Shown one piece after another: positions 10,954 through 54,800 of a stretch of 64,000 nt of DNA (positions are counted from its first letter, which is position 1; every line of letters begins with the position of its first letter). The stretch covers positions 2,976,001 through 3,040,000 of the forward strand of contig OZ176059.1 of NCBI GenBank assembly GCA_964247055.1. Reading direction: 5' to 3'. A program made the translations under genes and the position numbers. The DNA comes from Paragordius varius. Its lineage: Eukaryota > Animalia > Nematomorpha. The notes beneath the pieces are model-generated. The model was not told the origin of the DNA, did not search any database, and saw only the letters and a program-made list of their open reading frames with translations.

Positions 10954-11124
10954 TTAAAATGTGTTAAATGCTTCCAAAGCCATTAACCGTGTATAGTTGA
11001 GCCATTCAAATGCCCATTTTTGATTCAAGGATAGTATTGAGCAATCTTGTAAGGTGACAGATTTTAACAATGGATTAAGGTCTAGGCACATGCGAAAACC
11101 ATGATGTTGTATCATATTGTGTTC
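10954..11124 (-). CDS. Alternative terminal GALNT exon 13b: second lectin gamma-subdomain
   Basis: ttttataacaag|GAA, phase 0, 171 nt to TAA. Encodes EHNMIQHHGFRMCLDLNPLLKSVTLQDCSILSLNQKWAFEWLNYTRLMALEAFNTF*, aligning to exon 13a [51 protein letters not shown] (minus strand) about 55 nt after the stop. Confidence 0.85.
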   Translation of the reverse strand, partial: EHNMIQHHGFRMCLDLNPLLKSVTLQDCSILSLNQKWAFEWLNYTRLMALEAFNTF

Positions 11125-15925: not shown

Positions 15926-17816
15926 TTAAGGTGGTAAATTGCTTATGATAGTTTGATTGTAGAAGGCAAATGACCATTGCTGTGTATTACTAGCCATGTT
16001 ACACGTATCAACGAAAACGAATCGTTTTTCCGGATCAAAATCTAGGCACATTTGTGTCGTGTGATGATATATACGGTTTTTGTCCTAACACATATATGGA
16101 TATGTAATGAAATATAAAAAACATACTACTTATTTATGATAGTATAGCAAAAATTGAATACACATGTTAGTATATATTGGTCTCCGTTGAAAGGAGTGTT
16201 TTTGACTCTTAATTTATTTTCACAGACCTGAGAAGCAGTTTGACCAGCAAATTGCTTTGTGCAAAAATTTTTAAAGTTCTATAATTCATTTGCTCATTAG
16301 ATACTTTTGTACTGATACATTTTCCTATTATATTTTTATAATTTGTTTCATTTATTATGCTATACTATATTATTTTCACTATACATTTGGCAATTTATAT
16401 TATATTGTTTGATTAATAATTGTTAAATTTTGGTTGTATTTTTATTATAATAATTTTGTAAACAAATCGTTTTCAAATGTCAGGAATCGAAAATGGAACC
16501 GGTTCCAAGTGTAAAGAACCGATTCCGGACCGCTAAATTTTTAAGAATCCAACGCGGTTCCGGCTCCATTGGTTCCACTTTTTTTAAACCGGTTACAAGC
16601 CCTGATATATATAAATCGCAAACAGAAACATTTGATAGCAATTAGTCCTCGAATGATAAATATATTATATATATATATATATCAGTCGACTAAATATATC
16701 TATCTATTTTCCTATTTAAACTTCTAATAACACATCCCGCTTTAGTGATCAAGACCGCCCCTAATAGGTATTCATTACACCATGGAAAGAGAGAGACTAT
16801 AAAACAAAAATTCATAAAATAAAACGCATTATTACACTTACAGCCAGCCAACATAATGATGGAAAAAATGTGTAAAACATACCGGCATATATCGCCACCA
16901 TTGATTCCCTTTCATACCGTGACACGGGTACATGGATACTCGTGTTTTGGGGGCAGAATAGGGCACATCTAAACACTTTTCTTTGCCATCAACCTTAATA
17001 TCACGTTTCCATCGCCATATAAACACCTTTAGGTGGGGACGGGGTATATAGATAGGAATATTGTATCATTAAAATATATATTTTTGAAATTAGGGAGCTA
17101 ATACAGGGGTGAACAACACAAATGGCTTCACGCGTTGCATTTTTTGACAATATCAAAAATAAAATTAGATTTAAACATGGAAAAAAATATATAATTACCA
17201 ACTATTTCATTAATTTTTGTTAGTTTGTTGGAAACAGGAAAGAATTACACAGAAAATTTATTTAGGAAATAGCAATTTTCCTAAGATATTGAAACATATT
17301 TTTCAAAATAAGGAAATTAATTTATTTAGTTTTCCAAAATTTTCGCGCCCAAAATATCTCGAGTGCCGCATGCGACCCGTAAACCGCGTATTGAACACCC
17401 CTGATCTGAATAATAATTTGTTAAAACTTAATATTAAGATTTTACCCATAAAATCATACCATTTTTACATATAAAGGCAAAACTTTTAAACGAAAAAATG
17501 TTGCGTTTTTAAACGCAACTTACTATATTATACTTATTAAATATTATATGTAAATTTTGCACCTTTAAAATCAAACAGTTTTTTTGCCAAAAAATATATT
17601 ATATTGGGCCATGCAGTGTATAGCGCAAAAAAAGATATGAAAAAGCTAAATTAAAGCAGATAATGTGACATGCAAAATAGTCACAAGAAGAAAAGTATAA
17701 TGGCATGCATATATAGTATAGTGTTGGATATTTCGTGTTTTTAATATATATAGTAGGGTTAACCTATGTATGAATAAATAATATATGTAAATAATATAAA
17801 GTGATCATATAAGAAG

Positions 17817-17847
<31 letters not shown>

Positions 17848-20800
17848 GTATAACTATACCATAAGGTTAAACATTTACCATGTTATGTTAACCTAATCAC
17901 ATTATGTATGCTGCAAACTCCCACCTGCATATTACGTAATATTATAGCTTTCAAAGCTATTTTGTTCATTAACTTTAACCCTAACCCTAAATGTCAACAA
18001 GTGTAGTGTACGTTATATAAGTTAACGCGCAATTTTTATTCGACCCATTATAATTAAAAACGATTAAACTTTATCCTTTTCTCTCATATATTACAATAAA
18101 TTCTAATTTTTGGTGAATTTCAGGAAAAATTAGCGCAATTTCCCACAATTTTTTGTTTTTGAGTTAAGGTTTTTTTGTTTAGAATTTTTACCGGTAAAAA
18201 ATTCCAACATTGATTCCCCAAACTACCATGGCAATTGCGTATCGCTACGCTGGGGAACGTAGATTCACTGGCATCTAAACATTTATGGCTACCACCCATA
18301 AAGATTTCCCTCTTAAAGCTCCAAATGAAAAACTGTGTAGTAAATGTGTGTCAATTTTTACGCATTAATATATACATACATAGAAAAATAATTACAGTAG
18401 TGTATAGAATATACAAATATGTGTCCATAAAAGAATAAAAAAATGTTTTTTTTTTAAAAAAAACAATAAGCCTAGTTGTAAATACACATATCTATAATAT
18501 CTCCTTGTTTTTTTTTAAAAAAAAACATTTTTTTATTCTTTTATGGACTAATCTTGTTTTACTCCATACGCTACTGTAATTCATATGGCTATGAAATATA
18601 CGAAAATGTGTTTAGTCACCACATAAAACAAATGTTAGTAATTTGACAAATGAACGGGGTGAGAGTTAAAAACCTTGAATCATCAATTACACCGGGTAAC
18701 AACATGCATATACAATTAAAAAAGATAAAATTTAACAATATGTATATATATATATTCTTTAATTAACGAGAAATATAACCAATTAGTTACTTTACAAATT
18801 GTTAGGATTAAAGCGGATAAGAAAGTTTTATAGATACATGCACCATCATTAAGAATATGCATTGCTAGCTATTAAATATAGCCAGATAGCATATAAAGCA
18901 TTATTCTTATTGGCTGTCAGGAAAAAGAGAAATAACTATAGGTAATAATATATCTTTCCTTACTTCATATATACCATTTGCAATTCAATTTCACCCTTTA
19001 ACAATTCGCACTCACCCTCAAAATAAATTATGTGTTTTCGAACTAATATTCATCATTTAAAGGAAATAAATTCTTATGGCATAGTTTATTACTTTTTCAG
19101 TATTATATTAATTTTAATTTCATTTTGAAAAAATATAGGTAATTTTCAATCATAAAAAATCCATAATTTAATTTAGGGTAAATTATTGTTTAAGGGGTGA
19201 ATTTAAATTGTTTAAGGGTGAATGAATTGTAAATGGTTTATTAATGAAAAACTAGCAATGTATACTTACTCATACTGTAACACACGCAAAAAAAGTTTTA
19301 AGGGCCCAAATATAATATGTTTTAATTATTCAATATAAATTATGGCACAAAAAAACCGTTCGATTTTGATGGTGACCACTACTAAAACTAAAAAAAGGTA
19401 ATAAATAACAAATAATTAGCCTGCTATATATATATAATAATAATTTAATTTGTTATAAATAGTTTAGTACTATATGCATATATAATCCATACCTGATCCC
19501 CTTCAAGGGAGGGATCATCCTTAACACATTTATTCACAATCAAATTTTCTTTGGAATCGACCTCCAAACATAAGTCATTGTGGATAGATCGGACCTATAA
19601 TTGATATGTTAATTATTATTACTGAAATTTATTGTAAAGTTATTGAGAGTTTGAAATTATTAAAATTTTTTAAAACTATTTCGAAGCAATAGAAACGGCA
19701 CCTTTTTATAGTATTTTGAAGGCAGTAGAGGGGTTAAAAAATTGATCATTTGGAAATATTTTTCTTTTTTTCCCACAAATTTTAACCCATTATTATTAAT
19801 GTCTTATTTAAAAATAAATTTTGTTACTGTTCATTAAAAAGTTTATACTTTTTTGGTTACTTACTTACATGTAGCAAAATAACTGGGCTCTCTCTCTGTA
19901 AGTGAAATTGAACCGAACTTATTCACAAACTGTTATTAAAAGTAACACCAATTTACCCCTTTTATATTGATGCATATTAACTAAGAATAATAATGAACAC
20001 AATTAAATTTTATTACAACTACATCCTTATTTAGATATTCACGAATATAAAATACAGAGAAAAGTTAAATATAAATGCAAATAATTTTGTATAGCGGTAA
20101 CACAAGGAAAAAACAAATGTTATAGGATGTAGTTATAATCGCTTCTACAATATAGAAAAATAAAATTTCAGCACAATTAGAACCGAAACTCTTTTAGTTT
20201 AAGGTGGTCTATGTTGCCCAATATTCCATTTCATATTTTATAAAAACAGTTTTTTACAACCCCCCCCCCCCCAAAAAAAAAATAGCTAAAAAATTATCAA
20301 CACATAGACACAAAATGTTATTGCATGTGTCATTTTGTGAAAGTCATAATAATAATAATAATATTAATATACTTTACAATTTTAATTAATGCCATATTGG
20401 TATTAAATATGGGATACAATACACAATCATATTATTGCAAAAAAGCTAATGGGTTTTTACACTTTTGGTTTTTTTCTTAATTTCTGGTCTGGTAAAGTTT
20501 AACAAAAACCCAATCATGCCAATGAAATCAATTAACCATAATTAGCAAATAAACGATTTGCTATAAATTAACCGATATAATGATACAATTATAATTTTAA
20601 TTCGAAAACTACTCTCCCCGTTAATTCATATTAACAAACGTTTATTCAACAATAAAAATCATTTTTCTCAAATAAAGGACCAAAATACATCTCTATTGGT
20701 ATAATCATAAGGTTTAATTATGGAATGCCAATTAATTTACCATATATATCAGTAAAGAGGTATTAACCAAAAAAACATTTTATTTTACAACGATGATACA

Positions 20801-23746
20801 ATACATTAATACGTTTTCGCCAAAAACTACTATTTAATTACGTAGTAGCGAACCTTTAACCTATCAATAAACCCATTTTTATTAGGATTTGTTTTTCGTT
20901 TACTTTTGTTTTAGCACACTCGGGGGGGGGGGGTTCAATAATGGAATATACAATACCCAATCATTTTGGCAATCGATATAGCATTTATAGTAAGAAAAAG
21001 ATTCACTCATATATTAATTTACCGATATAATGTTATCAGATACAAGGTTTTAGTCGAAAAAAAAACTGTAATTACTTCAACAACCATTATCTATTAACCA
21101 AGGCATTTCGTTTCATTTAGATTTTTAAATAATGAAAAAGGGTAAAAATGAGGGATAAAATACCTCTCCGTTAGCATAATCGGGAGGTTCAATCATGGGA
21201 TATTTGAGGGGAAGATCGAATGAAATGTTATGCATGAACCAAGAAAAGTTTTTACAATGCAAGCGTTCACGCAATGCCTTTTGTTCCGTTAAATCTCCTG
21301 GGTCTAAGTCACGATATTGGGGTCTAATATATATATATATATATATATGCATATATAAAAGAGTAGAAATTTATTAATATATATGTACCATTTACAGTTC
21401 AAATTCACCCTCAAACAATTAAACACCCTTGAACAATTTAAATTCACCGTAAAAATAAATTATGCGTTTTCGAACTAATATAAGTCATTATTAATATGAA
21501 ACACTATCTTTATGGCATTACTTTATTATTTTTTAGTATTATTTTAATTTAACAAAATTTTATTTTTAGGTAAATTTTAATTTTAAAAATCATAATTTGT
21601 TTGAGGGTAATTTGAGTTGTTCAAGGGTAAATTCAGATTGTTTAAGGTGAATTTAATTGGTTTTATGTCAAATTTTTGATATCTAAGTATTTATAAAGTC
21701 ATAAAAAATTATAAATTAGAATAATAAAAATATTAACCAATATTATAGATAAAGGTTTTTTGGTATATATATAAAATTTTATGTCATGTTTTTAACTTAT
21801 CGTTTAGGGTTGTGCAATTAAAGAATTAGAATTTAGTAGTTAAGTCAAATAGATAATATAAAAAAAATAGTTTTATCATATTAATTGAAAAAATTTAATC
21901 AAAAAGATAAAAATAATTTATAAAAAAAACAAAATAAATTATGTTAGTTGTATATTTTTAAAAGAATATTACCTTCGCATATAAATGTATTCCTTATATT
22001 CATCCATCCAAACTTCTGCAACTCGTTTATAATTCTATAATATAATAATAAGTATATAATAGAACAAAGATTTATTATATACCGTTTAGAATTCAAATTT
22101 ACCTTTAAACAATTTAAATTCACCCTTGAACAATTCAAATTCCCCCTAGAATAATTCATAATCACCCTAAAATAAATTATATGTTATTTAAGATAATTTC
22201 CTAAATTTTTATATATTCTTAAAAAATAAAATTTTGTTTTGAATTGAATAATACTGAAAAACTAATAGACTATGCCATAAAGATATATTTTATATTAATA
22301 ATGAGTTATATTAGTTCGAAACATTATATATTTTTAGGTGAATTTGAAATGTAAATGGTTATATTAATTATTTTCCCAAAAACATCAATTGAGTAATATA
22401 GAAAAAAATGGTTTTACTTATCTAATGCTAATCAAATATATACATACTATCTAGTAGGAATGACAAATTAAAATATAAAATAAAATTTTTAGGTAGTTAT
22501 ATTAATTTATTATTTAATGATACACAACCAATATGAATGATTTTCAAGAATAAAAAATGTATGTACACACTATATGTAAGAATTTGTCTACACAAAAGGT
22601 GGTTTACTGTATTGTTTTAGTTAGTTAAAACATAAATTATAATGTTAAACCTATAAAATTGTCTCTATATATATAAAGTTTAGTCTTTTTTCATTTTTTA
22701 TCAAAGGGTAAGGACTTAAATTAATTGTATTCAGACTTGTGAAGGCGTTAAAACAATCGCCTGTTTGCCCAGGGCTAATTGACAGTGATGATAGAAAAAT
22801 CGCATAGATTCGGGGTTCAAACTCTGGCACGTAGTTTACTATAAGAGAATAAAACTTTAAAATATAGCATTTACACCTCAAATTTACTCTTGACGACTAC
22901 GCAAATCCCCCCTTAAACATTTCAAAATCACCGTATAAAATAAATTTCGTGTTTTTTGGAAATTCAAAAACACGCCTATATTTATGTAGTTTATAATCAG
23001 TATTAATTAAACAAATATGTTATGATAAACTATGCCATAAAGATTTGAGTAAAATTAGCACCCCAATACACATGTTTAATTTTTTAGTCCAAAATGAATT
23101 TGAAATGTTCAAGGGTCGTGTATTTAAGTTGCAAATGGTATTAGTTTAGTTATATTACAATGGTAATTAACGGATTGGTTATGTTTTGTAATAATAGTTG
23201 TTAAAATCCGTAATATAACGATAAAAAATAATTAAATAGAATTAAATGAAATTATAAATAGAAATTATAAACGATATGTGAAACCCTTTGTCAATAGTAA
23301 TCGCAGACTAGTTTCGTGCTTGTTAGCACTCATCAGTACGACAAACTATTTGACTACTTGGGATTTAACATATCGATTTCGTAAAGATATATATATATAT
23401 ATATAATTTCTATTTATTATTTCATTTAATTCTATTTAATTATCCTTTATCGTTCGTTATATTACGAATTTTAACAACTGTTATTAGTTATATTACCTTG
23501 CCAACAAAATCACCAATTTGTGGGTTAGGAAAAGGGGCATACTTTCTATAAATATGACCGACACGGGAACATGGTGCATCTACCATTGAGCCCCCACATT
23601 GCCAAATCTAACATTTATCATTCATTGTAACATGAAAAAAAAGTCATAAAAATATTATATATATCTATACAGTAGCGTATGGAATTAAACAATATTAGTC
23701 CATAAAAAATAAGTTTATTTTAAAAAAACAGTGGGATATTATGGAC

Positions 23747-23803
<57 letters not shown>

Positions 23804-26800
23804 GGGTTGTTTTTGAAAAAAAAAACATTCTTTTATTATTTTATGGACTAATATTGTTTTATGCCAAACGCTACTGCATACATGTATATATGAAAAAAAA
23901 CATCTTTACGGTTAATTTTATAAAAAAATAATGTAATAAGTACAAACAATGATATCAGTCAGTATATGGTATTGGATTATTTATAAAATTTAATTTAAGG
24001 TTATATATTTTTTTAAGCGTTCATTATTTGCCTTCAACTCATGTCAAAATCCAAAAAAATGAATGAAAAAAAATTATATTCTTTTATAATTTCCAATTTA
24101 TAATGAAATTAACTTAAAATAATGTAAATAAATTCAATTTTTAGAATAAAGTTTTGACATTAGAGTAATGAATCAGTCAAAAAGGCTCAAGTAATTACGA
24201 TTAAAAAGTATATCACATGTATTGTGCAAATATTTAGTTTAGTTTACATATTATTGTTCACTAAACGAATCATCAAATGATGATATAATAATAAAAAAAA
24301 CCTTAAAAGATAATTCATATTGTTCCCCGCCCCAAATCATGAGACCAGTGTCATAACCGCCCAGTTCCCAAAAGTAATTTCGATCCATGGCAAATAACCC
24401 ACCAGCCATAACGGGACTCCTATATAGTAAATGAATTTTTTGTTTCATTTGGTGTGCAAAATGGGAATAATTAAAGGTGTTTGGCAAAAAATACATTCAA
24501 TCAATCTATCTATTATATAATTAATTGAATTAAATTATAGAGAAAGTATGGTTGTCTTTTTAAAAAGATATTTGTCTTTTACAGTAACCCCCTAAATAAT
24601 AATAAACTTAACATATAAGTAATATAAATTAGATAGCATATGTTAATCATCGTGAATTTTTTTAGATTATTTAATAAAGCCATACTTTTTGATTCAAATT
24701 GCTGAAAGTCGTAGTTGAGAAAATTTTCCTTATAATAAACCTCAGATAATAATTGAAAAATTATATTTAACCATTTTTTTATCGATTAAGCTTTTTTAAA
24801 TATCTGTAGCATTATATTAAATTTTTAATAAATTTTATATATATATTTTAAAAGGTCATATATTTTTAATAGGGGAAATTTTATAAAAAGAGCGAATAAT
24901 TCTGTCAATTAAATAAGATTGATCCTATTATAGATAATTTTTTGTGAGCATTTTCCCATTCCCATTATTATTAATGTTTATAATTTGCCAAAACATATAT
25001 AAACGACAATTGATAACATAAATCTATACAATATCAATATGATTTTTTTGTAAAACATATGTATGTTAAAAAAAATTTTTATTAATTAATTTCACAGTCA
25101 TGGTCGTAGAAATGCATTGATAACTAATCGAATTCAAAATCCACAAGACAATAGTAAGTGCAGGTAAAAATAAAATTATAAAAACAAAAGGTTAAATATT
25201 TTTTCTTGAAAAAAAACAGAAACCATACTTTGCTACATTATTAACCCATAGGATCGTTTTGGGTAGCGACATCGGAAAGCGCTGTAAATTCTCATTTAAT
25301 ATTATACATTTTTCTTTTAAGCAATTAGGTCAGGGGTGTCCAACATGAAAAGCTTGACGCGCCGCATTTTTAACTCAAAAAAATTTGACGTCCGACATTG
25401 GAAATATACAGTAAAAGTTTGTATTATACGGACAAAACGTAAAAGTAAGATGTTAATATGTAACACAATCAATTATGTAATTAACGATTGTAATTAAATA
25501 ATTTATATAGGAAAAATAAGAATTAAAAAAGTATGGTCGTCGTTTAGAAAAAAAATATTTGTCTTTATATTTTTACGTTTTGTCCGTATAAATTCAATTT
25601 TTACTGTATTTATGAGCATTTGACCTTTTAGATTTCAAGCTTAAGACTGTAAAATTCAAAAACAATATGTAACAATTTTTTATAGTTTTTGTCAATTGTA
25701 TAGACTCATTCAAAAAAAATGGTTAAGAAATATTAAATATGTTAACATTTTGTGACATATATTAATAATTTATGGATTTCCAAATTTTTGCAAACGGCAT
25801 ATAAAGCCTCAGGGCGTGTTAGATACCCCTGGTAATATTATTTAAATCCAAATTTCCAAAGGAAAAAATTGAAAAGTAAAAGGAAAATATATTTAGACAA
25901 TCACACTAAAAACTTGGATTTTTTCTCTACAAACTTTATGATTACAATTCGTAAGAAGAGCGGGGTGATTACCAACTTTCATATTCATGTGTCTTAGCAA
26001 CCCGCCTGAAAAAAATCATTGCTGTTTTTATACAATCAAAAAATATGTTTCTCATAAATTTTTACGGTACCTTAAATTTTTTCCCGTACATACTTTTCTG
26101 TATAGTTTTGGGGTTCGATCAGTTGGTTGTTGATGCATTTTTATAACCGTGATTGCGATCACTTCCAAAAATAATTAATGTTAAACTGTTTGGATAAATG
26201 TTTTTACCATGGGATAAAACGTGAAAAATGGTGTAATTAACGTATAAAGTTTCATTGTCGTTCGCACTTATTTAGGTGGCCAACATAATGAAAAAAAAAA
26301 CAAACGGGAAAAATTTTTTTTGCGATGGCCAGGCTGTCTTCTCTTGATATATAATACAAAAAAGTTTGCTTATCAAATTTTAACTTTAGTAAATTATTTT
26401 TTCCCCGTCCACCCTTAAAAAAATTAAAAGGCCCTTTTTTAAAATTAGACCCCCAGTTCGAGCTTATTCCTTGTAAAAAACAGATTTTTAAGAAAAATTG
26501 AAAACAGAAAACTCAAACTTGAAAGGATCAGCAGGGTGTGCCAAGTCCTCAGGGAGTAGGGGAAGGCGTTTATAATAAAGTTCCCAATCAAAGGCTCCAC
26601 GGGCCCCCTCATCCTGTGCTCGGTATTCAAAATTCTCATAATCTATAACGTCTATGAAGGGACACACCACTGTCCGATAATTTTCGGCAATCGGTTCTAA
26701 ACAACAATGTAACATTGCAATATAAATAAAATATGTAGGTATGAAATATAAAATTTTTAAATGTTTTATCTTTTTTTTTATAAGAAAATTGTTTTGATCT

Positions 26801-28648
26801 AGTTAATTAAATTGTTGTAATGTCATAAATGTAAGAAACTGAATGTAATTATAAAATATATATATAGTGCTCATTTTATTATTAGCCACTTCACATTATT
26901 TTTGGCCACTTGGAGACAATACAGTAATGTGTGAGCAAAAAAACAGCAAATGGATGAAATTAAACAATTTTTTCGTATGTTACAACATTGAATTTGTAAA
27001 TTTAATTATGGTCAAAATTTGTCCTATATCATAAGCTACTATAATACCAATTGGCCAACAATAAATATAATCATGAGCTTTATTAAGCAAAAATAAAGCT
27101 TTTAAACTAAATACATGCAGATCGTTCAGGTTTCCTATTTCAAATTACATTATGAGTAAGTATACATTGCAAGGTTTTCATTCTTATTGCCAGATGGAAA
27201 ATAGCAAAAGAGAAATATAATTGGTCTATAGTTATTTTTTCGCTTTTCACTACAGTCAGTAAAGTAAATAATAATTCATACCGCATATGCTATTTGGCAA
27301 TATTTAATGAAAACAAAAAAACTAGAAATGTATACTTAGTCATGTTTGTAAAATCGTTAAAAAACAAGGGTTATTTTCATACAACCCAAATAGGGCCACT
27401 AATATATAATTATATATAACCATTTATAGAACCGATTATATAGATATAACCCAATAAGGTATTTATATATGGGATTACACAAAGTTTAAAGCTAATTATC
27501 ATGAGGGAAAACGTAAATAAACATTTAGAACTAAATCCAAATATCTTGTAAAATATAATTTGAGGAAATGATAGATTATAGTTTGGAGCGAGCAAAGAAA
27601 AATTAAATAATGATATGTCAATTTAGTTAAATTACATGTATGACAAAAAAAGACTTAAAAAAATTAAACACCCACCAAATTTATGGAAAAAAAAGTAATT
27701 ACTCATTTATTTATTTAACCCCATACTACAAATCCTAATAACATACATATAATTTTATTTGATTATACTTTTTAAACCCCAATTTTATTAATTTACATCG
27801 TTTTTGCAAAATAAGAAATAGACATGTTAATTAAAAACACTGTATTATATTGTTCACAATTATATATACGATATATGTAGAATATAATATTTAAAGCTCT
27901 ATTATACCGTAAAAATATTTGACTTTATATAAATGTTTTACGTTAAAGCATTTCTACAGTATTATATTATTATAAAATTCATTATATTCATAACAAAGTT
28001 AGGATATGTGTGAAAAAAAATTATCCAGGAGGCTTAAAAAGTATGGAGCTGTCTTAGAACAAAAAAATGATTATTTTCACGTTTTGTTTTTATACTTTTA
28101 TTGCTGTAACTAATAAATAAATAAGTAAATAGAGATACCCAACAGAGGTGGTAACCAATTAACGTTACATTCGATATGGCTATCAAGGAATATAAGGACC
28201 TGACCTGTGGCGACTTTAGCGCCCGCTAACCGTGCCCGGATAAGACCTTGACGTGAAGGCATTCGAATAACGCGGGCCTGAAAACGTGCTGGAATTTTTT
28301 CCGCTAAATACCGTTCTAGCGGTTCCTTAAGGAAATCTGTATGAGTGTGTAAGTGTGTATGTGTTAAAAAATAGTTATATGATGTACTAAAGTGGTTAAT
28401 TAATAAATATTGTGATAAAATGGTTTTGTATAAGAGTTTTATTATCATGGTGGTTAGAAAGTTTTTAAATTTTATAAATTTAACAGGCACAAAAAAATTT
28501 ACATTTGGATGATATTAAATTTTATTGTAGTATACAGATTTAAACATTATATCAAAAACAAACCTGATCCATGCATTAAAAATTAACACTGAATTCTCAA
28601 AGAAAACCATTTAACCATTTTTTAAAAAGTTTGCAAAAAAGATTAGCC

Positions 28649-28689
<41 letters not shown>

Positions 28690-31600
28690 TCCATCTACGC
28701 CTCAAATTCACCCCCTCAAACAATTTAAATTCGTTCTCCTTAGATTTATATGTATAACTCATTATCAATATGAAATATCTCACTTTATGGCATAATTTAT
28801 ATTATTTTTTCCAAATATTCATATTTAACAGGTAACAATTTAATAATGCAAAAATTTATTTTAGGGGTAATTTTGATTTGTTCAAGGGTGAATGTTTAAT
28901 GGTATATAACAATATAAGCAATAACTAACCTTTAGTACTAAAATCATCCACAAGTATAATTTCATGTATAAGCTCATGAGGTGACCTATTTATAACACTA
29001 TGGACGGAACGTAAGAGTGTGGTCCAATGTTCCTGATGGAATGGAATGACAATACTAACATTGGGTAAATTTGGCAGATATTTTTTGGTTTTACATCTAT
29101 TGTGCCGATAATGCAGTAAAAATTGAAATAAAATAATACGGTGAAATATATAGACAAAAATTTTTTTTCAAAAGATACCCAAACTAGACCAGTAAAAATT
29201 GAAATTATACCGTGTCAAAACGTAAATATATAAAGACAATTTTTTTTTTAAATTAAATCTGTTGTTTTTAAAATATATACGTCATTATTTAATATGCAAA
29301 GTATGAAACAAAAATGTATATTAACACCAGCAATTAGGTATTTCATAATTGTTAGAAAATAAAGAAAACTTAAGGTTTATGAAAGTATGGTGCCTTTTTT
29401 TAAAAAATATATGTCTTTACATTTTTACGTTTTATCCGTAAATTCAATTTGTTTGTATGTATATATATATATTGTGTAAAATCAAAGAAATATTAGTGCC
29501 CTTAAACTGGGATATATAAGGGTACTTATTAACATTTCATTTTGTTTTTTATGCTCTAAATTGTATTACAGTATGAGTAACTATACATTGCTAGAAAATT
29601 ATTAATTTATGTTAAAAATCGCATATAAAATAAAGGGCAGTAATATGAGCGTATAGTTATTTTTTACTTTTTTCTAATATTAACCAATATTCTCTTTGTT
29701 GTATATGCCATTTGGCAATAATTATAACTTTCTAGCCAGCCAATATATACTTATTCATACTGTAGATTGCAAATCGGTAAAAACACCACAGTTTCTTTAT
29801 GGGAAAACTAAACTATGTTCTTCTTTGAACGTCAAGAGAATGTTTAAGCCTATAATTAGGACTGTACGCTATTGATGTGGATACTTATGTTAAGTTATAT
29901 AGTTATTCAAATAGATTGAATGAATTATTAAATAACGTGTATTAATTAAAATATTTTTATGAATGAAAAATGCGATTTATTATGGAAGATAAAAAAATTT
30001 TATAGTTTATTAATAATTCTGAAATAAATTTCCAATTTCCACATAATTAAGAAGCAAAAACATTTCCATAAAATTCATCTACTAGTTTCAATAAGGTCTA
30101 AATTGGATTCGTTACCCATAAAAGTAGTTGATAGATATTATATATACCATTTGTTCATATTCACCCTTAGATAATTCAAATTCACACTTAATCAAACTCA
30201 CCCTCGAACAATTCAAATTCACCCGAAAATAAATTGTGTTTTTTAAAATTAAAAATTACCTTTATTTTATAATATTTTTAAAATATGAAATTCGGTTTAT
30301 TAATATAATGCTGAAAAAATAATAAAATATGCCGCAAATATATATTTCATATTAATTATGGGTTATATTATCCTGAAAACACATAATTTATTTTTAGGGT
30401 GAATTTTTGTTAAAGGATGAATTTAAATTGTTTAAGATTGAGTTTGAATTGTAAATGGTATATAAAACTTTACTGGACTAAACTTCAACAAAAGCAAACA
30501 TAACTTTACAAATTAATATAATATGTAAAAGTGTTAAGATACAGTGGAAATATAAAATCAAATTATATTATATTTTTATATATCCAAAAAATAATATTAA
30601 TATTATCTTTGTTCGCAAAATCATTTTTTTTTTGAATTTTATGGCAACTAACAATTATAATTATATTTTTACATGTTCCAAACATCTTACCATTTTTTAT
30701 TAGCCTATATCCAAAATTGGGGATAAATATTAATATTTTGTTTCAATGAATTAATTACATTTTATTTTAAGTTTCTTATTATATCTTAGACATTATGTAA
30801 CGGCTAGCTTGCAAATATATGTTCACAAAGTATTGGTAAAAATTGATATTTTTAAACAAATCGCCACAGAATTTTTTAAGCGTTGAAAATGCGTGGCCCG
30901 GGAGACCATTTAAGTTGGACATCCCCTGTTTGAATATTGATACACACAACTGAAAAACCATGTATCAAAAATTTTGGATATACTTTTTCACCAAAATTTC
31001 ATGTGCGGTTCGCGAAAAATTATCTAAAAGTTGCAAAATATGCTTACAAAATCTTGGTAAAATTTACAAATTTTTTGAATAAACCTACTTATTCAATTGG
31101 CAGGAACTAGATAAAATTTAGTTTGTATTTGCATTATAAAGTCTCGCATGCTTAAATTTATTAATTTATTTATAACTGCATTTATATATATTAAGAATGC
31201 GGCCCGCAGAGCCATTTATAGATCCCTTGGCTTAGCAAACATTTGTGCAAATAAGCAAAACACTGTTTTTTGCACACAAAAAACAGTCCCATTCGAATCT
31301 GAATTTGAATTAAAAGAATTTTTTTATAAGATTGCAACAAAAACTAAGATTGATAAAAAACGCTTACAATGGATGCCTAATGTCAGGTAATGAACGATCC
31401 AAAGCAATCCCATCCGAAGCCAAGGCATTAAACCCATTAACGCTAAAGAGTTGTTCTCGTTTCTTTTTGGTTTGCGCGTCTTGGGCTACGTTATAGGCTT
31501 TGCCTTGTTCCCCTAAACCTAATTATTTATACATGTTATAAAAAAAATATATTTACACCAAACCAACTTGAAAAATATTAAATATTAAATTTAAACGTTA

Positions 31601-40730: not shown

Positions 40731-43700
40731 TTAATCAGGTTTACTACATATCTCTGGTCCGGTACGTGAGTATTTATATTTAGTGTTATGTTTTGAAGTT
40801 CCAATAAAATTATCCTGGTTACAGTCATCATGAGTGACATATTTTTTATATGTGGTCTCTTTCAACACACCAAATTTTTTGCATTTATATCTTCGATTTT
40901 GAAACCTAATAAAATTATATTATATATTTATTATTCATCAGCCATTTAAATCACCGGGTACCCAACACAAATGATTTGGATCAAAAAAAAATCCCGTGGG
41001 TCGCAAAATATATAGGCATAAATAAATTTTTTTATTAAATTATTGTAAACAAAAGATTGTAAAAACTACCATTAATTTTAACATTCTAGTGTTTACTGCC
41101 GAATTCGGAAAGTATTATTGAAAAAATATATTAAAAAAAATAATTTTATTTGGATTTCGTAAAATTGTGCATTTAAGAAATTTCTTGCAGGCTTCAGAAT
41201 AATTTTGGAGGACCGCGTGTTGGCTACCCCCGATATAGATGAATATATGAAATTATACCAAATTTTGACTTGAGTATTTGTAAGTTTAATGCTTTTGGCC
41301 AATTTGTCCCTTTCATACGAGGTTAAATACGTCTTGGTAGCAAATATTTTTTCAAGTTCTCGTATTTGAGCCTGGGTAAATAGGATACGTTGTCTGCGTT
41401 TAACTGAACTACCTACGACATAATCAGTGCTATTATCATTTTCATGTTTTTGTCTATTTATGTCATTTTTATCCATATCATTATTTTTTATATTTTGATT
41501 GTTAATGCATAAATTGTCCACTCTCTCCTTATTATCAATATCTACTACATTATTAGGAATTGTTTGATTATGAATGCTACAAAAGTTATATGGCATATTA
41601 TGTGTTGGATTAGTTAATGTTGTATGTCGCGAATTTGTCAATTTCGTCCCATTTGCACAATGATAGGGTACAAGCGTTGTAGTAGACCCATAACAAAACT
41701 GTTTTTCTCGTTTTGTGTCACCGTGTTTTTGGAGAGTTTGACACAGTGCAATTAACGTTGAATTTTTCAACCCTAAACATGTTTTATTATTGGCATTTTG
41801 TTTACCCGATAATTTTTTCTGGGTAACCGCGTCAATTGGTTCATCATGAATGTGGCCTATATCGGATTTTGTTGAATCAGAAATAAAGTTTTCGTCGACA
41901 TTGGGACTGTCACCAGTAATATTGGGATTCGTTGGATTGTTTTGAGTATAAGATGGTAAAAATATATGTTGAACAGTATTTTGATTGCGTAAATTTTTTG
42001 ATTCTCCTATCCCTGAGTCAAAATTAATCAAAAATTTTTTGTTTTGATTGATATATGATTTATCATCTTGTGGTGAGGCTTGTTTATTCAGTATGTTTTT
42101 GGTCAGATTTTCATAGCATGATAAGCCAGTCCCATTTCTCTATAAAATGGCATACTTATACATATATTGAATATTGATTATATTTAGTTAGAGGACAAAC
42201 ATATGAATTCGGTTTATTTTTGGCCATAAATTTGGACCAATTATTAACATATAAACATTTAACTATCACAATTAAATATATTTTAAATTTAATTAAATAC
42301 AAACTTTTAACTGTGTCGCAATGAATTTAAATATTAAAATTTGTAAATTTTAAAGGCATAGTTGATAAATTAGACAATTCCATCAAATACAATATCAGTT
42401 CAATGGATCTTTTTAATTTTTCAATTTGAAAATTAGGTTAGTGTACCATAATTAATATTAATCCAGTTGAAATATTTTCCCAAAATTTCCAATAAACAGC
42501 CACCTTTTACTGAATTGTAATGCGCCCTTTGATATAATGCATTACAGCGTATTCCCCAAAACAATTGATATAAATAATTTTTATATGAAAAACCTATGTA
42601 TTTTTTTACCAGGGTGTCTTGCACAAATGGCTTCGAGGGCAGCATATTTTTACTCAGAAAAAACGCCGGGCCGCATTCCCAAAAATATATGGGCATCGAC
42701 AAATATTTCAATTGATTTTTTTTAATATATATAACTGTAAAAAAATTGCGATCACAATATAACTACTATTTATTTTAACAATTTCTACTTTATTGCCAAA
42801 ATTTGGGGAGAGACGTACGTAGTCATAAAATTTGTTTAAATATTAACTAATTTTGCAAATAGTAATTTTTAATTATAAAATTAGGAATTTGATATTTTTA
42901 AAATTTCCTCAGGCGGTATTTTCGGAAAGGTATGCGGTTCGCGTATCTTACACTCCCTGATTTAAATAATAACCATTGGTGTTTTTAGAGCTTAACACCA
43001 ATGTATCGAAAAAACAGCGCACATTTTTTAGTTATTTGAAGACAGCGTTCATATATATATTATATGTTAACACGTTGACGGACAATTGCGGCTATAGCCG
43101 TCAAAGCGAAGTTCACAATGTGGCATGACTGCTATAGCCGTCCAAAACGAAACGGTCGTTTTTAGACACTACGGCTATAGCAGCACAAATGTGCACTTAC
43201 TGGCGTATACGTAGAAGCATAGTGTCGTGTTTTGAAAACATCTTTTTAGGTTGAAGTTCATATTTCACCTGTTATACGAGTTGCAGATTCAGTATGCACG
43301 TGGTTGTGAAGGGAGTAGTGCGATCGTGTTTTCTATTGAATTTATAGTTCTTATTGATACCCTTAACGATTAATTAAAGGTATAATCAAAATTAAGTTTA
43401 TTTAAGCAGAAAGAGTAAAACTATACTTCTAACATTCTAAAAATCACAAAAACATATAGTGTCGATTTTCGAACTTCGCTTGTTCCTACTGTCCGTCAAC
43501 GTGTTAAGAGTTAAAAAAAAGTGTTATACCTGCATTACCGTTGTAAGATAGTATAAATAATATTTTTGATAGGCATTCTGCCACGCATTCAGATAGTATG
43601 TATAATAAAGTAATTTTAATTTGAACGATGTCCCTTGCTCGGTATCCGCGGTTTTGTGGATAGATGATATATTTTTATGATTATTATCTTTATTTAAATC

Positions 43701-51831: not shown

Positions 51832-54800
51832 TTATCGTCCACACACAATACAATTGATTTCGCGTCCATCGGCATAAATATCACAGCTAAGACTTCCACA
51901 ATGACTTTCCACAAACAACAAGAGAGAACCGGTAGCAACGGTAGTATTGAGACCACGCGGGTAAATATCTTGTTTTTCATGGACGCAAATGTATTCAGTT
52001 CTGGCATACCTTTCCCGGGTTGACATAATATAACCACGGTATATTTCGGAGAAACCATTGGGACACATAGAAAGGGCCGGTATCATAAGGTTCATAGTTT
52101 TGTTCGGGACATAGCAAACGGAACAAGCACTATTGTCATAAAATATAACATAATATTACAGTCGTAAGACTCTTTTTCTTTTTTTTATTTAAGGTAAGGG
52201 CTTAAATGTATTAGCAGACCCATGAAACCCTTAACATTACATGTCCAGGCTGATGAGAATATGAAAAAAAAACAGTATATATCCTATGTCATTACCACCC
52301 CTCCACTAATAAACATTATAATAATATTGATCAACGGATCGTAATTAAGGGCAAAAATGCATGGCCAAGCTCTTACACTTAGGAAAAAAATTGGCTTAAT
52401 ATATGTAAGAATGATTTTATCTATATTTTAGAAGAGGTCATATATTTACGCATTTTTATTGTGGATTTCCTCAAGCTCCTTCTTCCAAGCTGTTTGTGTC
52501 TGGAAAATGAAATAACGAGCTCCGAAAATTAGCGAGTTTCCATCAATTCCATCCTTATAATCAGCGAATTTAGGTTGGTCCGGCATGCAGAGATAGTTGG
52601 CACCGCTACCCGTGTAATGGAAATGTCCAGAAGCCGTGTGCCCTTAATACAGAAAATATTTAATGCTGCTGTTCACCACAAATGAAATTTATCTAATTCA
52701 AATGACATTCAAAGGTTTGATTTTGGATTAAATATAATTTACTTACCAAAGTAAAGTTGCTCTTCGTCAATGTTACATGTGAGTGATCCCCATCGCGTAT
52801 ATACCATACCCTTCATCCCAGTCATCATGGTATCGATTTCTTAATTCATATCATATAATATATATTAAATTCAAGGCTTAACTAAAATTCCCAGATTATA
52901 TTTTAAATATATAGCAAGTATGTTAATCAAAAATTAATGACAAGCGCGCAAAATATGAGCCAGTTTAATCGCGTTAAATAAAGAACGATAAATGTTACCC
53001 GTTCTTAGCTCCTTTTTGGCTTCCGAACAATCCGGACATATGCCATCTAGACCAGGTTCACCCTTTTCTCCAGGCTGTCCTTTTTCCCCGGGTGGTCCTT
53101 GGGCACCGTCACGACCTGGGTTTCCGTCTTTACCGGCTTCTCCACGAGGTCCCTCTAGCCCATCACGACCCGGGGCTCCTTGGATGCCAGGAGGACCTGG
53201 GGGACCGGAAACACCGGGTTCCCCTTGAGCCCCGGGTGTTCCATCACGACCTGGGGTTCCTGGTTCCCCTGGGAGTCCATCTTGACCGGGTTCAGCTTTC
53301 ACCAATGTTTCGGTCACGGGCCCGGGCAGACCTGGGGCACCATCTTTTCCCTGTATGTTTATTATGATATTTAATGAAATTTCGATTTTTTCATACGAAA
53401 ATAATTGAAAAGAGTATTTTATTTAAATTTTGATCATCTTTGTACTATAAACATTAAATTTTATGTGGATAATGGAATGAATGTGTTCAAGGGTCAAATA
53501 TTACCGGTGGGCCGGGTTGACCTTCTGGTCCTGGTGGTCCTTGCACTCCAGTCATACCCTTTTCTCCAACCGGACCAGGGGCACCATCTTTCCCATCTTT
53601 TCCGGGTTCTCCTGGATAGCCATCTTTACCGGGGCGTCCATCTAAACCGGGTTCTCCATCTTGGCCATCCTTACCGGGCTCACCTTGTTTACCTTGAAAG
53701 ATTTTTGTAAATATATATATAATATTTTTCCTCATTTAACATAATTCAATATATAAATTGTACATAATGTACAACATTTCTTTCGAAATAACCCAAGTTA
53801 GTTAGGATCATACATTTTACTATATGAGGAAAAACAGTATAAATCTATAAAATTTTGTTACCTGGTTCACCATTTTTTCCATCCACTCCGGGTTCACCAT
53901 CCCGTCCTGGGGGACCTTGTGGACCTGGTTCTCCTGGGTTACCTGGGGCCCCATCGTTGCCTGGGGTTCCTGGTTCACCTGCATCACCTGTCATACCCTT
54001 CATACCAACTTCACCTTTTTCACCCTAATATGGATAATATTAATTAATTTAGCACATATTAAGTTTTTATACATCAATGAATAGCGTTGGGTGATTGCAA
54101 TTAACTCCGATAACGCATTTTTTGGATTAATTCAAATAGTAAAAAATAAAATATCTCTTTCAAAAAAATAATGTACAGCGGGTCCTGTAGGTCCGGGCGG
54201 TCCTTCTTTTCCAGGCTCACCTGTTTCACCAATTTCTCCACGCGGTCCAGGGAATCCGGGCTCGCCCTGATCTCCTTTAACGCCTGGATTTCCTTCGGGA
54301 CCAGGTTCACATTGGCATGCGGCTATTATGTTAAAACATTTTTTAAATGTTATCGAAAGAGATTCATTACTTTTGTATATCGTGTAATTGGGATACATTT
54401 TTGATTTTTTGTATTTTGTATTAGAAAAAACTTTGCAGTTTAGGTAAATTAATAAATTTTATACTATAATATACAAGCGAGTCATAAATCAAAAATTTGA
54501 TAATAAATGTAGTATACCGTTTCCTCCACCTCCAACACTGGCTAAAATACCCTGTCCATTTCTGCGGGCCACTTCGTTGGCCGAATAATAACCGGTGGCC
54601 GGGTTCTCGGCCGCTCTTTTTGAACGTTTTCTCCTGAGGGTGTAGGAGGCAGCTGTACCATTTTTTTCATCCACAATTTCATTTGTTTCATCATACAGAG
54701 AAGCATCTACTGGTTCATCATCTAACGTGACAAGAGTGCTATCTTCAACAACAACCTTATCAAAAAAATTATTACAAAAAAATCATTAAAATAACATTTT

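Follow-up and report, generated by a model that had tools for sequence, protein, structure and literature searches.

Paired beta-repeat exons in the lectin domain of a predicted GALNT10-type GalNAc-transferase gene of hairworms

The window analysed here is a stretch of 64,000 nucleotides (nt) from the hairworm Paragordius varius (contig OZ176059.1 of assembly GCA_964247055.1, positions 2,976,001-3,040,000), which has a genome of 110.6 Mb; all positions below are those of the window. It is very AT-rich, with a guanine-plus-cytosine (GC) content of 22-40%, and its minus strand carries, between about 35.7 and 10.95 kb, a gene for a polypeptide N-acetylgalactosamine (GalNAc) transferase, an enzyme that initiates mucin-type sugar chains. 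The C-terminus of this gene encodes a ricin-B type lectin domain of three repeats, alpha, beta and gamma, whose exons each match or resemble PF00652. Five exons make up the lectin part: a single alpha exon, two paralogous beta exons (12a and 12b) and two paralogous gamma exons (13a and 13b). Homology searches were run exon by exon, and the exons were never joined into a spliced protein. The features of the lectin part, with orthologues at the corresponding locus (L006) of a second hairworm, Gordionus sp. m RMFG-2023, are:

19493-19594, minus strand: alpha-repeat exon, single copy; Gordionus orthologue L006:61863-61967
18192-18332, minus strand: exon 12a, variant beta repeat; 141 nt, 47 codons, phase 0; Ricin_B_lectin E = 6.4e-4; Gordionus orthologue L006:64806-64946, 62-63% identical depending on the alignment method
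17027-18191, minus strand: intron between 12a and 12b; 1165 nt, 26.5% GC
16883-17026, minus strand: exon 12b, canonical beta repeat; 144 nt, 48 codons, phase 0; Ricin_B_lectin E = 6.6e-8; Gordionus orthologue L006:66003-66146, with 12b sharing 73% of residues with the beta repeat found in protein P0161 of Gordionus
15926-16084, minus strand: exon 13a, terminal exon of the canonical gamma repeat, with a stop codon; both annotated Gordionus proteins use it
10954-11124, minus strand: exon 13b, paralogous second terminal exon for the gamma repeat, which has a stop codon of its own; Gordionus orthologue L006:68349-68519

Single exons of the gene match the Pfam families Glycos_transf_2 (E = 1.2e-13), Glyco_transf_7C (E = 9e-7) and Ricin_B_lectin (PF00652). 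The DxH metal-binding motif of the GT-A catalytic domain is present as FLDSHIEC in an exon near 28139-28336, and the Gal/GalNAc-T motif region is present as well, with the Glyco_transf_7C match in support. A working profile (A6), comprised of the natural partial protein P0159 and separate single-exon rows, retrieved GALNT10/pgant6-type proteins of many phyla. Nearly all of the named top matches are GALNT10, GALNT-like 6 or pgant6, and the second-ranked match is P0161 of Gordionus. P0280, a longer isoform from the gene of P0161, matches the human GalNAc-T10 structure 2D7I with E = 1.4e-182 and T1 with E = 7.5e-124. Judged by sequence, the hairworm gene encodes a GT27 polypeptide GalNAc-transferase, predicted to transfer GalNAc to Ser/Thr and to prefer glycopeptides, and its best matches place it in the GALNT10/pgant6 subfamily.

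The two beta exons, first noticed in an initial annotation of this DNA, lie on the minus strand where that annotation had placed them, and both peptides are present, which confirms the observation of tandem duplicated beta-subdomain exons. Exon 12a lies between an acceptor ...acacag/TTT and a donor CCG/gtaaaa, and exon 12b between ...ctaaag/GTG and CCG/gtatgt. The last residue of the alpha exon is the Gln of the alpha Q-x-W, and the first residues of either 12a or 12b complete the alpha repeat. Alignment of the two beta peptides (45% identity) bears out that CLD, CHG and GNQxW are common to both, as had been proposed. The same holds for several other features read from the sequence earlier: 12a has Arg for the 12b Tyr two residues before Cys-His, and this Arg is also found in Gordionus; 12a is much less basic, with a net charge of +1 against +6 for 12b in Paragordius and of -1 against +7 in Gordionus; and the alpha repeat reads CLE instead of CLD. 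This repeat also has no His and no Asn-Gln. The extra Cys of 12a fared less well. It is present as a third Cys in Paragordius (GNQCW), but is not conserved, the Gordionus 12a having GNQWW. All four exons, 12a, 12b and their Gordionus counterparts, start with F-[IV]-W.

Inside the window a tblastn search matches 12a and 12b with each other at E = 1e-9, and in the whole genome the best other match of 12a is 12b and vice versa (E = 2e-7). Neither the window (tblastn) nor the 110.6-Mb genome contains a third copy of the beta exon, and 12a does not derive from some other paralogue. In a representative protein library, a profile of 12a and 12b together retrieved mostly multi-repeat lectins and short exon fragments of other animals; identity among these matches does not exceed 51% for 12b or 55% for 12a, and no hairworm protein is included. 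Exon 12b shares about 50% of its residues with GALNT10 beta repeats from other animals. Outside the hairworms, the identity of 12a is about 30-40% over most of its length, with a few short fragments at 50-55% over a conserved 30-residue core; its closest matches in the representative library span only about 30 residues.

At the Gordionus locus the alpha, 12a, 12b, 13a and 13b exons are all present, and their order, limits and phases agree with those in Paragordius. The splice sites of 12a are kept in both species, and the intron between the Gordionus beta exons is 1056 nt. The Paragordius exons are 50-95% identical to P0161. The GC content is 36-46% in exons and 22-30% in introns, and no alignable intron block was found between Paragordius and Gordionus; only the exons align. 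Between the two genera, the proportions of differing nonsynonymous (pN) and synonymous (pS) sites in the lectin exons are:

alpha: pN 0.249, pS 0.785
12a: pN 0.256, pS 0.838
12b: pN 0.207, pS 0.706
13a: pN 0.307, pS 0.852
13b: pN 0.265, pS 0.854

In all five exons the synonymous sites are saturated and nonsynonymous change is low, and for 12a an approximate Fisher test gives p = 1.6e-9. Both beta exons are old and under purifying selection, 12a being no less constrained than the exons next to it, and what is new here is their conservation in a second hairworm genus. Exon 12a is very probably translated. It is closer to its Gordionus orthologue (62%) than to its neighbour 12b (45%), and since each copy is nearer to its orthologue than to its neighbour, the two have not been homogenised by gene conversion. 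The Trp of F-x-W in all four hairworm beta exons is at a position where 102 GALNT10 sequences of other animals have Leu, Phe or Ile (F-x-[LFI]-[ST]-W). This shared hairworm-specific Trp suggests that the beta exon was duplicated within the hairworm lineage, probably before the split of the two sampled genera.

The difference between 12a and 12b touches the sugar-binding site. Human T10 binds GalNAc through its beta repeat, as the initial annotation had stated, with contacts made by Asp525, Tyr536, His539 and Asn544 (PMC4432651; PMC10901373). The Asp of C-L-D, the His after the second Cys and the Asn of G-N-Q are the accepted GalNAc-binding motif (PMC10901373), and the aromatic residue at the position of T10 Tyr536, or T2 Tyr471, is a contact residue (PMC4432651). 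The spacing of the alignment to T10 puts both the 12b Tyr (M-Y-P-C-H) and the 12a Arg (I-R-N-C-H) at the Tyr536 position. Exon 12b aligns residue for residue with the beta-repeat site of human GalNAc-T10 (PDB 2D7I/2D7R) and keeps all four contacts, Asp, Tyr, His and Asn. Exon 12a differs from the human enzyme in having Arg at the Tyr536 position, where the aromatic feature is therefore missing, and keeps the Asp/His/Asn triad. Of the 104 GALNT10-type beta repeats that were matched, 41 have Tyr at this position, 32 have Phe and 30 have Trp, and the sole non-aromatic residue belongs to the Gordionus 12a. Asp, His and Asn are invariant in these 104 homologues and present in 12a and 12b of both genera. 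The Arg and its surroundings, T-F-P-S-V-x-I-R-N-C-H-G, are identical in the two hairworm genera. We know of no second beta exon in human GALNT10.

The alpha repeat and both gamma repeats are without the binding motif, which leaves beta as the only canonical sugar site, as in T10. Exon choice had been proposed to toggle or retune this site. 'Toggle' is too strong, as 12a keeps Asp, His and Asn, and human T1 has Leu at this 'stacking' position in a beta repeat that is functional and binds GalNAc (PMC10901373). 'Retune' fits better: the change from Tyr to Arg, along with the change in charge, may plausibly be read as a retuning of the site and of its surface charge, not as an off-switch.

How might the use of both exons in one transcript be prevented? 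With an intron of 1165 nt (1056 nt in Gordionus), steric hindrance is excluded, in agreement with the earlier remark that exons 1.17 kb apart are too distant for it. Nonsense-mediated decay is excluded as a device since both beta exons are multiples of 3, and a clash of U2 and U12 splice sites is excluded since all sites are GT-AG without a U12 consensus. Weak donors such as GTTTTT are also found at constitutive exons of the gene. Given the intron of 1.1 kb, the exon lengths and the GT-AG sites, any exclusion between 12a and 12b would need splicing factors or RNA pairing. Pairing between introns was assessed by a scored complementarity alignment with dinucleotide shuffles, and the search for competing docking and selector sequences that had been proposed gave one modest pair in Paragordius together with (TA)n tracts:

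19335-19374, minus strand: upstream arm of an inverted pair that brackets 12a, with its partner at 17560-17599 in the intron between 12a and 12b

The two 40-nt arms are 75% complementary, with a duplex energy of about -36 kcal/mol, and their score was reached by 3 of 200 dinucleotide shuffles, which makes this inverted pair a weak candidate for RNA pairing.

Each of the three introns around the two beta exons contains (TA)n microsatellites (16653-16683, 17811-17858, 18728-18755 and 19425-19451), whose self-complementarity could let them pair mutually; such tracts are common in the genome. Two telomere-like CCCTAA units are found at 17970-17990, in the intron between the beta exons. At 18385-18585, 53 nt upstream of the 12a acceptor, there is a palindromic repeat of about 190 nt with 77-nt arms that are 87% complementary. 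We rejected this strong hairpin as a gene-specific signal, since it resembles a miniature inverted-repeat transposable element and has at least 40 genomic copies at 82-90% identity.

Annotated Gordionus proteins provide transcript models for the same exons. The 90%-identity cluster of P0161 contains a form of 657 amino acids that uses 12b and 13a, with three RefSeq XP records, and a form of 704 amino acids that has both 12a and 12b. The latter, P0280 (CAK9291493.1), matches P0161 throughout except for 47 residues inserted between the alpha repeat and the beta repeat. This insert is the 12a orthologue, so that both beta exons are present in series (L006:64806-66146). The RefSeq models use 12b and 13a, and the submitter's BRAKER1+2/TSEBRA set has forms with 12b alone and with 12a and 12b. 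The 704-residue model is probably either a gene-finder artefact or a cassette isoform. An AlphaFold2 prediction for it gives the trefoil of alpha, 12b and 13a a predicted local distance difference test (pLDDT) score above 90, and residues 558-602, the 12a part, are disordered with a pLDDT of 25-33. As no other homologue covers the insert and it has no alignment depth, this result is weak either way with respect to 12a. In GALNT10 of other animals (Schistocerca, Parasteatoda) the isoforms differ by skipped linker exons and not by lectin exons.

The explanation that we favour, with moderate confidence in it as a whole, is that the lectin domain of this GALNT10/pgant6-type enzyme would draw on a single alpha exon, a choice of two beta exons and a choice of two terminal gamma exons. 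Exon 12b would be the ancestral default beta repeat, strongly basic and with the full set of GalNAc contacts. Exon 12a would be an old copy from within the hairworm lineage, retained as protein-coding since before the genera split, and spliced instead of 12b in some tissue or life stage; from the sequence, this use of 12a in place of 12b seems rather likely to us. The only canonical sugar repeat of a 12a isoform would carry Arg in place of the platform Tyr and lose about 6-8 positive charges, with Asp, His and Asn kept. The swap may thereby retune the choice of substrates, already glycosylated or charged, that are held by the lectin domain for catalysis, and a change of substrate preference by exon choice is plausible. 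The initial interpretation, that exon choice alters the main glycan-binding site, is in this respect partly supported.

Several results weigh against such an exchange of exons. The open frames around 12a and 12b gave no candidates in a set of 5.8 billion proteins, and a 12a-like repeat is in none of the 120 best protein matches. Among the annotated Gordionus proteins there is no form with 12a alone. Intron complementarity in Gordionus is at background level, with nothing like the pair seen in Paragordius, and no docking and selector pairing is conserved between the two species. The change from Tyr to Arg need not alter GalNAc binding much, given the Leu of human T1. In Caenorhabditis elegans, moreover, exon pairs with lengths divisible by 3 and a long intron between them can act as tandem cassettes (PMC4165533).

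Is 12a, then, an optional cassette, either skipped or included together with 12b to give a long form with 47 additional residues between the alpha and beta repeats? The two forms annotated in Gordionus, of 657 and 704 amino acids, are exactly those expected, co-inclusion would be in frame, the nematode cassettes are a precedent, and the confident trefoil predicted around the disordered 12a part indicates that co-inclusion need not destroy the domain. However, the 704-residue model comes from a BRAKER1+2/TSEBRA pipeline able to take in any in-frame, coding-like exon and has no counterpart in RefSeq, and the low pLDDT of 12a is expected anyway for an insert that other homologues do not cover. 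Over a saturating divergence 12a has also kept both Cys, the hydrophobic core, Asp/His/Asn and Q-x-W, which would be needless in a floppy insert. We regard a cassette as unlikely, although it deserves to be taken seriously.

Alternatively, 12a could be an unused relic of the exon duplication that looks like an exon by chance or through sequence exchange with 12b. Open frames of 47 codons are not rare, 4.4% of stretches of this length being free of stop codons. Yet 12a is in place in a second genus, with splice sites kept, a pN far below the saturated pS and flanking introns that can no longer be aligned; its greater similarity to its orthologue than to 12b speaks against ongoing conversion, and there are two copies only and no array. 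A relic is thus very improbable. We give even less credence to a conserved non-coding role, in which 12a would be a decoy exon or a platform for splicing regulators governing the use of 12b or of 13a and 13b. Conservation alone is no proof of translation, and the only transcript-informed models use 12b, but the constraint on 12a is of the coding type, with pS saturated at 0.84 while the residues of the fold and of the sugar site are kept, and its DNA identity is not above that of 12b. The use of 12a in place of 12b remains the reading we prefer.

Alternative exons for lectin repeats are already known from pgant9, gly-5 and gly-6. In Drosophila melanogaster the choice between pgant9 exons 8A and 8B is tissue-specific and changes substrate preference, the splicing being proven by cDNA, quantitative polymerase chain reaction (PCR) and rescue (PMC6115407), and the structures of both isoforms (PDB 6E4Q, 6E4R) are among our PDB matches. 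Like the hairworm pair, these are two alternative homologous exons (of about 30-47 residues) that each encode one lectin sub-repeat and differ strongly in net charge. The fly exons, however, encode the alpha repeat of a T1-type enzyme and place a charged loop over the active site, whereas the hairworm exons encode the beta repeat of a T10-type enzyme, the change is in a sugar-contact residue, and we infer the splicing from sequence. In C. elegans, exons 9b/9c/9a of gly-5 and 8a/8b of gly-6 are mutually exclusive by reverse-transcription PCR (PMC4165533). These are GalNAc-transferase genes of the sister phylum with clustered homologous exons that are multiples of 3, and one gly-5 pair has, like the hairworm pair, a long intron in between (1466 nt). 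The nematode exons, compared here by their published description, are 102-111 nt in contrast to 141-144 nt in hairworms, and in several nematode pairs exclusion is enforced by an intron below the length that can be spliced (11 and 34 nt).

The hairworm case is distinct in three ways: it concerns the beta repeat in an enzyme of the T10 type, the residue altered is a sugar contact that does not otherwise vary in the subfamily, and it comes with a second alternative pair, that of the gamma exons. The pgant9 pair sets the precedent that a spliced change of charge redirects the enzyme, and shows that natural isoform pairs are informative. Exon 12a is a naturally occurring version of the T10 beta site, already tested by selection, and offers a direct experiment on the contribution of the aromatic platform. 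Hairworms would be a third invertebrate lineage in which the lectin repeats of GalNAc-transferases have been diversified by exon duplication, and should the gly-5 and gly-6 clusters turn out to be homologous, the alternative use of lectin-repeat exons would be ancestral to nematodes plus hairworms.

The gamma repeat is duplicated as well. Exon 13a is 54% identical to the gamma repeat of P0161. Exon 13b, with an AATAAA 54 nt after its stop codon, is 59-60% identical between Paragordius and Gordionus depending on the alignment method, has the same acceptor position and stop in both, and keeps its C-terminal EWLNYTRLM..AFNTF in the two genera. In Gordionus it is found 1.6 kb beyond the annotated stop and is unannotated. 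Current hairworm annotations thus miss or mis-join exons of this gene, 13b in the one case and the two beta exons of the 704-residue model in the other. Most likely, judging from their sequences, 13a and 13b are two alternative terminal gamma exons. Since P0161 uses 12b-like and 13a-like repeats, and 12b is the beta exon that resembles those of other animals at about 50%, the path through 12b and 13a is the canonical one and 12a and 13b are the extras. A further, tentative possibility, which we hold to be rather doubtful, is a combinatorial lectin system on a single T10-type catalytic domain. Two beta and two gamma exons could give up to four modules, which might be regulated by stage (parasitic or free-living) and re-aim O-glycosylation at different mucin-like substrates.

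The remaining exons of the gene, with approximate limits, are:

near 35698, minus strand: start codon
34981-35031, minus strand: small exon
about 31368-31518, 28931-29137, 28139-28336 (DSH motif) and 26519-26696, minus strand: catalytic exons
about 24302-24424, 23497-23607, 21973-22034 and 21164-21323, minus strand: further catalytic exons

Exact look-ups of exon 1 and of the 657-residue Gordionus protein gave no record, and it was the 704-residue form that led to the Gordionus locus. When the exon rows were aligned to P0143 and P0087, the matching parts were too dispersed to be usable.

Upstream of the GalNAc-transferase gene, an open frame of 312 codons at 41093-42031 on the minus strand has the beginning of a homeodomain at its end (KRRQRILFTQAQIRELEKIF...QVKIWY) and belongs to the neighbouring gene. 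Farther on, at 52934-53317 on the minus strand, there is a collagen-like open frame with Gly-Pro-rich triplets, located where the GC content of the window is highest (40%).

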